64,000 nucleotides of DNA from Neoconidiobolus thromboides FSU 785 (GCA_025603075.1 MU626267.1:62001-126000), one strand, 5' to 3'; counted from the stretch's first letter, positions 39,738 to 42,228 are shown. A program made the numbers and translations. The notes: a model not told the origin generated them from the letters alone.

Positions 39738-42228
39738 ATGAATAATAATAACCACTTTTATTATAATGATACCTCAAGCTCAGCTAATTTAAGTAAAAGA
39801 TATCAATTTATAAAAGGTGAAATTGAACAGTTACATCAACTTGCATTGAGGAACCAAGAACAAATCAATGACTCAGAAGAGTTGGCGGGAAAATACACAT
39901 TGGTAAGGAATAAAATTATATATACAATAGTTAATATTATAATATTTAATATGAATTTATCCTTAGTACTATGAATTATCACATACATTAAATAAGAGTT
40001 TAGAAACACAGAAGAAAATCAACAGTTATGCCTTGAAATTAGTTAACGAAATGTTTGGGATTTTAGATAACGAGGTAACTTCAAAGATAATGAGTTTATT
40101 CCATTTAAAAGGGTGTTAATGGGTTTTAATATAGAAAAAATTTGAGTTAGCAGATAAAATTGAGAAATTCAAATTAATGATGGAACAAGTAATTTTAAAC
40201 AAAAAATAGTATTTTATTTTTATTAAAAACAATAACGTTTAGTCTAGAGATGACGATTTTAAAAGTTCAAATTTTGATTTATTGGAAACAAGTTTTAATA
40301 ACAATATAATACAAGAACATAAAAAATATAATAATTATTTATCGCAAAATAAAAAAAAGAGATTGCCACAAGATTATAGTAGACAATGTAAGTTTATTTA
40401 TTTTAATTATTAAGGCTTTTATTGAGTACTATACTAACTATTTCTAGCTTCCACAGATATCGATACTAATTTATTAAGACGTAATGAAGCTAATGCAATT
40501 CAATTAAATGAAAGTAATGTAGTTTTGTTAAATGAAGATGAAGCTATTTCAAGAGTAATAGCTTATCTAATACATTTTAATTTATTAATTAATAGCTCAA
40601 AAAGTATAAGAAAGGATATGACAAAGAAAAGTTGGTTTATAAAGAAGAAATAATAAATTCAAATTTAAGTTTTGCAAATGATAGTGAAAGTGATGGAGTA
40701 CAATATCGTAGACCAAAAAATTATTTCAAGTAAAATCCATTTTATTGATTTTTAGTTTAGTACCGATATTTTTATAGAAATTCAATCGAATCAGGAAAAA
40801 ATAAACAATTATCATCTAATAATCCACATATTAATTTAATTTCCACTTTACCTCATGGTGAAGTAGTTTGTTCTGTCATTTCATCTTCTACAGATGCCAG
40901 TATAATTTATACAGGTGGATTGGTATTATTATTATTGTTATTAATATAATATAATATAATATTAATATTAATTTATTTGTAATATTATTAGGGTACAGTT
41001 AAAATATGGGATCGTAAAAAAGATTTGATTAATCCGATCATGGTGTTGGAATCTATGGTAAACTAATATTAAATATTAAATATTAAATAATCATTAATCA
41101 AATTGAATAAATTAATTAAATTTTTAAAATCATTTTATTAGGATAATTATATACGAGCCATGAAAATAGCACCTAATGGAAAGTATTTAGCTGTTGGTGG
41201 AGAATCTTCAACTATCATTGTTTGGGATTTAACTATGGTAAATTAATAGAACTAGATATAGAAATTTAAATTTAAAAATAAAAAATAGAGTCGTCCAACT
41301 AGCTTAGCTTCTTTTGAAGTCGATTCCGAAGCTGTTTATGCAGTTACCTTTTGTCCTAACTCAAACCTTGTATTTGCATGTTGTTCTAATGGAGATTTAT
41401 TATCTTGGGATATTACTACACAGAAAATTTATAAGTAGAAAGTTCTAATTGATAAGTGAATTCCAATTAATAACTTTATATAGAGTATTTACTGGTCATA
41501 CAAATGGCATTACTTGTATTGATATATCTCCTATTGGTAGGAAAATAGCTACAGGTAAGATAAAATTCAAATAATAAGACTATGTTGTTAATATTGAAAT
41601 AATGAATTTTAGGTGGATTGGATAAAACAGTAAGATTATGGGATATGGAAAGTGGGAATCCATTAAGTATTATTAATATGACGTCGCCTGTATTTTCTTT
41701 AGGGATTGGCTATTTTGATCCACGATTCCATGATAAACATGGGGTTATTATTGTTGGGTAAAATTTAATTTATATTTAAAATAATAATGTTAATAATAAT
41801 GTTAATAATAAAACAATTGATTTATTTATTTATTTAGGTTAGAAAATAGTAAGATATCAATATTACCGATAGATGATATATCAAAAGCGCCGCTTGAAAT
41901 AGCCCAGTTTGGAGAATTGATTGAAGCTCATAGTAATTGTGTAATTTCTTTAAAACTCAATGAAGAAAGAAATAAATTTGTTTCTACTTCTAAAGATGGT
42001 GGTATTGTAGGTTGGAATTTAGGTGATTTTCATAAAATTGAAAATAGGTTTGAAGTAAGTTTATTATAATATAAAACCAAGTTAAAATTAATTGATTTGA
42101 TTAATAATTTCTTTTTACAGTACATTGAAAATGGTACTTTACTAGCAAGTGATTTGTCATTGGATGGTAGTATATTTACTACAGGCTCTGGGAATAAGGT
42201 GGCTACTATGTATGAATTAAATTGGTAA
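39738..42228 (+). CDS. TLE: Groucho/TLE-type transcriptional co-repressor (Q domain plus WD40), many exons
   Basis: Q domain KYTL|[17 protein letters not shown] (cf. HYVMYYEMSYGLNIEMHKQ). WD40 segments [89 protein letters not shown]. Confidence 0.88.

Follow-up and report, generated by a model that had tools for sequence, protein, structure and literature searches.

A probable Groucho/TLE co-repressor gene in the entomophthoralean fungus Neoconidiobolus thromboides, with intron positions shared with animal TLE genes

The Groucho/TLE co-repressors are commonly described as the animal equivalent of fungal Tup1. Animal members of the family (TLE1-4 and Drosophila Groucho) consist of a helical N-terminal Q domain, a variable linker and one seven-bladed WD40 propeller, arranged in that order. 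Fungal Tup1/Tup11/RcoA proteins are distant paralogues and functional analogues of Groucho, being WD40 co-repressors with an N-terminal oligomerising helix that DNA-binding repressors recruit through short motifs. They are set apart from Groucho by the Tup_N domain, a Y/L pair in the peptide-binding pocket and the partner protein Ssn6/Cyc8. The plant TOPLESS/TPR proteins are a further functional analogue, tetrameric co-repressors with a LisH/CTLH/CRA N-terminus that binds EAR motifs and with two propellers. Here, we describe a gene at positions 39738-42228, on the plus strand of a 64,000-nucleotide (nt) stretch of the genome of Neoconidiobolus thromboides FSU 785 (GCA_025603075.1, MU626267.1:62001-126000; hereafter the window). 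N. thromboides is an insect-associated, early-diverging fungus of the Entomophthorales (Entomophthoromycotina). Taking the evidence together, we consider it likely that this is a native, expressed fungal gene whose product is a true member of the Groucho/TLE family and not of the fungal Tup1 family.

Members of the family outside animals have been described before. Ichthyosporea have Groucho orthologues, and both Trimastix and Naegleria have Groucho-like proteins (Copley 2016, PMC4943189). These proteins qualify by TLE_N and/or a Groucho-type propeller with the F/E pocket pair, and they support a pre-animal origin of the family, but their hosts are holozoan or excavate protists and not fungi. 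All fungal sequences sampled in the same study fell into the Tup group; from two excavate sequences, Tup and Groucho were argued to be ancient paralogues, and more genomes were called for (Copley 2016, PMC4943189). This was the sole relevant paper found in our literature search, which returned no published report of a fungal Groucho. One protein of Entomophthora muscae carries the name ‘Transducin-like enhancer protein 2’, which appears to be an automatic annotation, and the E. muscae genome paper makes no mention of Groucho, TLE or a co-repressor. The family is known from animals and a few protists; the fungal kingdom is new for it.

The gene comprises 14 exons, with its ATG at 39738 and its stop codon at 42226-42228. 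All 13 introns are of the GT..AG type and 48-84 nt long, and the spliced coding region specifies 565 residues plus the stop. Searched against 1.84 billion representative proteins, exon 13 (72 residues) retrieved a single entry of 100% identity, the 565-residue record P0001, which by exact exon mapping is the spliced product of the window with the intron 5 acceptor that opens exon 6 at 40605. This stored record, used for all full-length searches, is GenBank KAI9298326.1 from a 209-kb contig of N. thromboides FSU 785. Its GenBank name, ‘WD40 repeat-like protein’, hides its Groucho identity.

Expression of the gene is documented by contigs from four public runs in two studies, aligned to 39600-42400. 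Spliced contigs cross 12 of the 13 introns precisely at the predicted borders, and a 1961-nt contig from run X1 matches the window with 100% identity in all the exons it spans. Since contigs lacking introns at GT..AG borders must come from spliced RNA, the gene is transcribed and spliced. The transcript reaches at least to 39600 upstream and at least to 42310 downstream.

The family assignment begins with the C-terminal propeller (residues 252-565), which is encoded by the rest of exon 7 and exons 8-14 (40827-42225). Its best match in the PDB is the WD40 domain of human TLE1 (1gxr/2ce8/2ce9/5mwj; expectation value (E) 7e-60, 206 bits), aligned in one stretch over residues 252-563, whereas yeast Tup1 (1erj) aligns only over residues 303-425 and, with 81 bits, scores on a par with WDR5 and other generic propellers. 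In a search of 5.8 billion proteins, the top ranks are held by P0001 itself, the E. muscae ‘Transducin-like enhancer protein 2’ (E 1e-105) and two Logan transcriptome proteins, followed among the matches listed by more than 100 vertebrate TLEs with 39-41% identity over the propeller. A profile of four fungal proteins gave the same rank order, with a multi-repeat WD40/kinase protein as the one intruder and a mite TLE added. No Tup1-named protein is among the matches listed in either the single-sequence or the profile search of this collection.

Structure comparison points in the same direction. The AlphaFold2 (AF2) model of residues 240-565 forms a single propeller of seven blades, with a predicted local distance difference test score (pLDDT) of 90. 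In a Foldseek search of the PDB, its six best matches are all TLE1 chains (E 2e-31 to 8e-29; template modelling (TM) score 0.82-0.85), the best of them superposing with a root-mean-square deviation of 2.1-2.5 Å at 38% identity. The first match other than TLE1 (E 7e-23) is eight orders of magnitude weaker, and Tup1 (1erj) is not among the best 50. A look-up in the ESM Atlas likewise led to TLE clusters, by features and by structure. An earlier note on this DNA, made from the sequence alone, had placed the product with TLE and not with Tup1. The PDB, database and Foldseek rankings, together with a tree against generic WD40 outgroups (below), agree with that placement and set the product apart from generic WD40 proteins, and every motif that the note had named, SKD included, is present in the translation. 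The propeller also contains a fungus-specific insert in blades 5-6, including a nine-residue stretch before HSNCV.

These data make it hardly credible that the gene encodes a divergent orthologue of Tup1 or some unrelated WD40 protein with only a superficial likeness to TLE, or that its contig is animal contamination. Pfam and PDB searches with single exons did return generic WD40 matches only and no TLE_N, as a generic propeller would give; single exons are too short, however, and this null result says nothing against the family assignment. Apart from the scores of 206 against 81 bits, searches with residues 1-250 and 1-115 gave no match to Tup_N (PF08581), LisH or CTLH even at E up to 10, and the pocket pair is F/E and not Y/L. 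The protein has a single propeller, and no Pfam match of the TOPLESS type. Tup_N was also not found in the N-termini of ten mid-length WD40 proteins from the exon 13 search. As for contamination, an animal origin of the contig is contradicted by its 209 kb of fungal sequence with ~25% G+C, by spliced transcripts in several runs and by the E. muscae orthologue, which has 11 introns in common with the N. thromboides gene. The G+C content of the window is ~20-30% throughout, and the Groucho/TLE-like locus does not differ from its surroundings.

The peptide-binding pocket provides a second line of evidence. In TLE1, residues Y532, Y578, L636, F661, L702 and L743 form a hydrophobic ring for WRPW (PMC3419727), and mutation of R534 abolishes recognition of all WRPW and eh1 motifs tested (PMC13308096). 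The F661/E677 pair separates Groucho from Tup, which has Y/L at these positions, and is missing from TLE6 (Copley 2016, PMC4943189). TLE1 numbering was taken as the 1gxr chain index plus 433, verified on F661. On this basis, the PDB alignment equates Y532 with Y308, R534 with R310, Y578 with Y354, L636 with L412, F661 with F437, E677 with E460, L702 with I494 and L743 with L538 of the fungal protein. Seven of the eight published pocket residues are thus identical, including the F/E pair (F437 in VFSLG, E460 in GLENS), and the change of L702 to I is conservative. None of the eight columns varies among the four fungal proteins. The pocket for WRPW and eh1 motifs, which the earlier note had described as apparently kept, is conserved in all but one of these eight residues.

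Transcript variation bears on the same part of the protein. In runs X2, X4 and X5, which stem from a second organism, two transcript forms occur side by side over the exons within 39715-42186, one identical to the window and the other ~5% divergent; such a pair may represent alleles in a strain that is heterozygous or multinucleate, or a recent paralogue. The two forms differ at 38 exonic positions, with 25 silent and 13 amino-acid-changing differences. Ten of these 13 lie in the linker (residues 110-251), and 12 of them before residue 259. The propeller shows 14 silent differences and a single replacement, while the linker is dominated by replacements. The propeller is under strong purifying selection, and the linker tolerates change, as it does in animals.

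The protein might have kept the family fold but taken up work other than eh1/WRPW-dependent repression. Vertebrate TLE6, which sits in the oocyte subcortical maternal complex (SCMC), is an example of such a changed job. The insert in blades 5-6 and the highly diverged Q domain are compatible with this explanation. We nevertheless regard it as very unlikely in view of the seven identical pocket residues, among them the equivalent of R534 and the F/E pair that TLE6 lacks, and of the strong purifying selection on the propeller.

The N-terminal region (residues 1-109) is encoded by exons 1-3 (39738-39902, 39967-40074 and 40135-40188; span 39738-40188) and resembles the Q domain of TLE1. Residues 20-105 match positions 14-96 of the 118 positions of the Pfam TLE_N profile (PF03920) with E 1.3e-5 and 26.0 bits. 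When residues 1-115 were compared with the whole PDB, the sole matches were the TLE1 Q-domain structures 4om3/4om2 (E 1.2e-4), and a profile of five fungal N-termini gave the same result (E 2.6e-5). Alignment of fungal and animal Q profiles with hhalign yielded E 3e-5 and a probability of 73.5% over 96 columns. The AF2 model of the N-terminus contains a long helix (11-85), a break (86-89) and a second helix (90-113); its sole credible Foldseek match is 4om2_D (probability 0.99, TM score 0.66/0.69), a match that is not fully independent because the input alignment included animal Q domains. Two of the introns shared with animals also fall inside this domain. The TLE_N match expected from the earlier note is thus present, and the Q-domain-only PDB matches, the profile-profile comparison, the fold and the two introns agree with it, but its score lies below the Pfam gathering score of 32 bits. 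From sequence and model, the domain appears to be homologous to that of TLE1 but highly diverged.

Between the two domains lies a linker of low conservation (residues 110-251), encoded by exons 4-6 and the start of exon 7 (40243-40387, 40448-40554, 40605-40729 and 40778-40826; span 40243-40826). It contains a KKKR basic patch followed by a stretch rich in S/T and D/E. MAFFT pairs KKKR...SSTDID with animal KKRK...SDGD, in a region that aligns poorly and in which E. muscae has no basic run. Overall, the N. thromboides protein and the animal Groucho/TLE proteins are alike in the order of a Q-like helical N-terminus, a variable linker and one seven-bladed propeller, in the pocket, and in five intron positions with their phases. 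They differ in length (565 residues in the fungal protein versus ~700-800 in animals), in the GP/CcN/SP linker regions, which are unrecognisable in the fungal protein beyond the basic patch, in the fungal inserts in blades 5-6, in the L702 to I replacement, in a Q domain that is only ~20-23% identical, and in kingdom.

Intron positions supply a line of evidence of a different kind. Exons were mapped exactly in five genes, namely the window gene, its E. muscae orthologue (14 introns), finch TLE3 (15), an icefish TLE (21) and a mite TLE (6), and a MAFFT alignment of 15 sequences served to compare intron columns. Of the 13 N. thromboides introns, five occupy the same column, in the same phase, as an intron of finch, icefish or mite TLE. 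Under random placement with phases kept, 0.16 matches are expected, and five were never reached in 200,000 shuffles. Two of the shared introns, both in phase 0 and both present in finch and icefish, lie before YYE(L/M)S and after LDNE/LSQE. A third, in phase 2 and also common to finch and icefish, lies inside the K/R codon where TQKIYK/VF corresponds to NQTLVR/QF. The fourth is a phase 2 intron inside the G of VG(L/M)E, shared with the mite, and the fifth is a phase 0 intron before the last exon, found in finch, icefish and mite. One more intron pair lies two codons apart, between LESM and DNYIR in one case and between DCL and NRDNYIR in the other. N. thromboides and E. muscae have 11 introns in common.

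The first two shared introns bound the exon at 39967-40074, which spans exactly 36 codons from YYELS to LDNE and is in phase 0 at both ends, as the earlier note had stated. That note had also equated it with two vertebrate TLE exons and deduced shared flanking introns. Finch TLE3 and icefish TLE bear this out: both have phase 0 introns before YYEMS and after LSQE, and vertebrates split the exon again between HKQ and TEI. Mapping confirms the proposed sharing of introns and extends it to five positions. The mite TLE (Panonychus citri) has lost all of its Q-domain introns, and its first exon spans 289 codons. It has kept the intron in VG/ME, which is present in the fungi and missing from vertebrates; this intron seems to be ancestral and to have been lost in vertebrates.

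The sources that outrank animal TLEs among the matches listed are N. thromboides, E. muscae and the transcriptomes SRR29032805 and SRR1825860/61. The E. muscae orthologue (KAJ9049280.1/KAJ9083720.1) is the closest named relative of the N. thromboides protein, with 37% identity over the full length and 49% over the propeller; it differs in its 14 introns and in a longer linker. The transcriptome proteins have 620-625 residues, are of the fungal Groucho type, share 63% propeller identity with E. muscae and cluster with it. Their sources are probably other Entomophthorales.

To place these proteins, a maximum-likelihood tree of the propeller was inferred under LG+C20 from nine bilaterian TLEs, five fungal rows and three generic WD40 outgroups. 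All nine bilaterian TLEs group together (99/100), with a stem of 1.7 changes per site, and the five fungal rows fall outside this clade; TLEs and fungal rows together are split from the three outgroups at 95/91. Forcing fungal monophyly costs 0.39 log-likelihood units and is not rejected by the approximately unbiased (AU) test (p 0.35), whereas forcing a clade of fungi and mite costs 15.7 units and is rejected (AU p 0.017). Propeller identity is ~40% between fungal proteins and animal TLEs, 49% between N. thromboides and E. muscae, and 83% between tunicate and finch. With the fungi outside the bilaterian clade, a clade with the mite rejected and fungal-animal identity at 40% against 83% for tunicate and finch, recent capture of the gene from an insect host is excluded.

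Several observations weigh against a simple reading of the gene as a true Groucho passed down within fungi. In addition to the TLE_N score below the gathering score and the low identity of the Q domain to those of animals, TLE_N is absent from the relative P0029 and reaches 20.4 bits in E. muscae. The tree holds no Tup1, ichthyosporean, excavate or non-bilaterian animal sequence, so that the comparison with Tup1 rests on PDB scores, Pfam and pocket residues. Within the tree, the N. thromboides row stands weakly (81/75) beside the long animal stem, a placement that probably results from long-branch attraction. A six-frame scan of the window found no frame encoding WRPW, and the partner motif, the tetramer and repression are all carried over to the fungal protein from TLE1 by analogy. 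Finally, the relatives among the matches listed come from Entomophthorales-like sources only, all of them arthropod-associated, and such a patchy range would also fit an old gene transfer.

In such a scenario, an ancestor of the Entomophthorales would have taken up a genomic Groucho with its introns from a holozoan, for instance an early animal, a non-bilaterian one or a protist akin to Ichthyosporea, and the gene would then have diverged and gained short introns of the fungal style. The restriction of the relatives that outrank animal TLEs to N. thromboides, E. muscae and two transcriptomes clustering with E. muscae would fit this scenario. The lineage also lives in close contact with arthropods, every fungal sequence sampled earlier fell into the Tup group (Copley 2016, PMC4943189), and shared introns would survive a transfer at the DNA level. 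Against these points, the fungal rows are not nested within the sampled Bilateria, a clade with the arthropod sequence is rejected, and the fungal WD40 domain is far less similar to animal TLEs than tunicate is to finch. The 49% identity between the two fungal species further indicates that the gene is old within fungi. Eight of the fungal introns are without an animal counterpart, and composition and intron size match those of the surrounding genome. We thus consider ancient horizontal transfer unlikely and favour vertical retention, which the evidence makes reasonably probable. The earlier idea of a retained ancestral Groucho system is supported to the extent that vertical descent is favoured and an arthropod donor rejected; with ancient transfer as an unlikely competitor, we still infer the retained system as such.

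Under vertical retention, Entomophthoromycotina would have retained Groucho alongside Tup1, and most other fungi would have lost it. If the protein works like TLE1, its Q domain would assemble into a coiled-coil tetramer, its propeller would bind short eh1-like or WRPW-like motifs in transcription factors on DNA, and the complex so recruited would repress transcription. A more specific proposal gives entomophthoralean fungi a pair of WD40 co-repressor systems side by side: Tup1-Ssn6, and a functional Groucho that is brought in through eh1-like motifs on homeodomain or other transcription factors. We put this forward tentatively, as a possibility that falls somewhat short of an even chance. Eh1-like strings do occur in the window, but only in AT-rich frames riddled with stops, and were rejected as chance occurrences.

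For the question of how the family originated, a fungal Groucho that combines a Q-like domain, an F/E pocket and five intron positions of animal genes supplies evidence of a sort that has been missing, all the more so if the genome also contains Tup1. It would show that Tup and Groucho are paralogues able to coexist within opisthokonts, and would push the pocket's origin back beyond the animal-fungal split. Should the two parallel systems prove real, Groucho-eh1 repression would predate the animal-fungal split, Tup and Groucho would be ancient paralogues and not kingdom-specific orthologues, and most fungi would have lost Groucho secondarily. N. thromboides also offers a non-animal system, amenable to culture, for asking what role Groucho had before animal development.

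Two introns of the gene call for separate description. Intron 5 is spliced in transcripts as 40555-40604 on the plus strand. An in-frame AG lies 9 nt upstream of its acceptor (40594-40595) and is unused in the contigs seen. The corresponding acceptor at 40595/40596, which would give a 568-residue product, was ruled out, as both the contigs and the GenBank model use 40604/40605; the latter drops three codons, and the product is therefore 565 and not 568 residues long. Intron 7 (40923-40991, plus strand) is the sole intron without direct coverage by a spliced contig, as simple repeats were skipped in the contig comparison, and is defined by the database gene model and the reading frame alone. 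It is filled by an AT-rich simple repeat of TAATAT/ATTATT units at 40915-40983.

The divergent transcript form shows small differences at two intron borders. At the last intron, it differs by 3 nt (42054/42124, with TAT between), and at 41757/41839 it shows an offset of 1 nt. Some contigs in runs X4 and X5 pass from exon into intron and then into unlike sequence, at 39951, 40227, 41027 and 41287, with loose ends of 94-255 letters. These loose ends may represent introns of the divergent variant, unspliced RNA or chimeric contigs.

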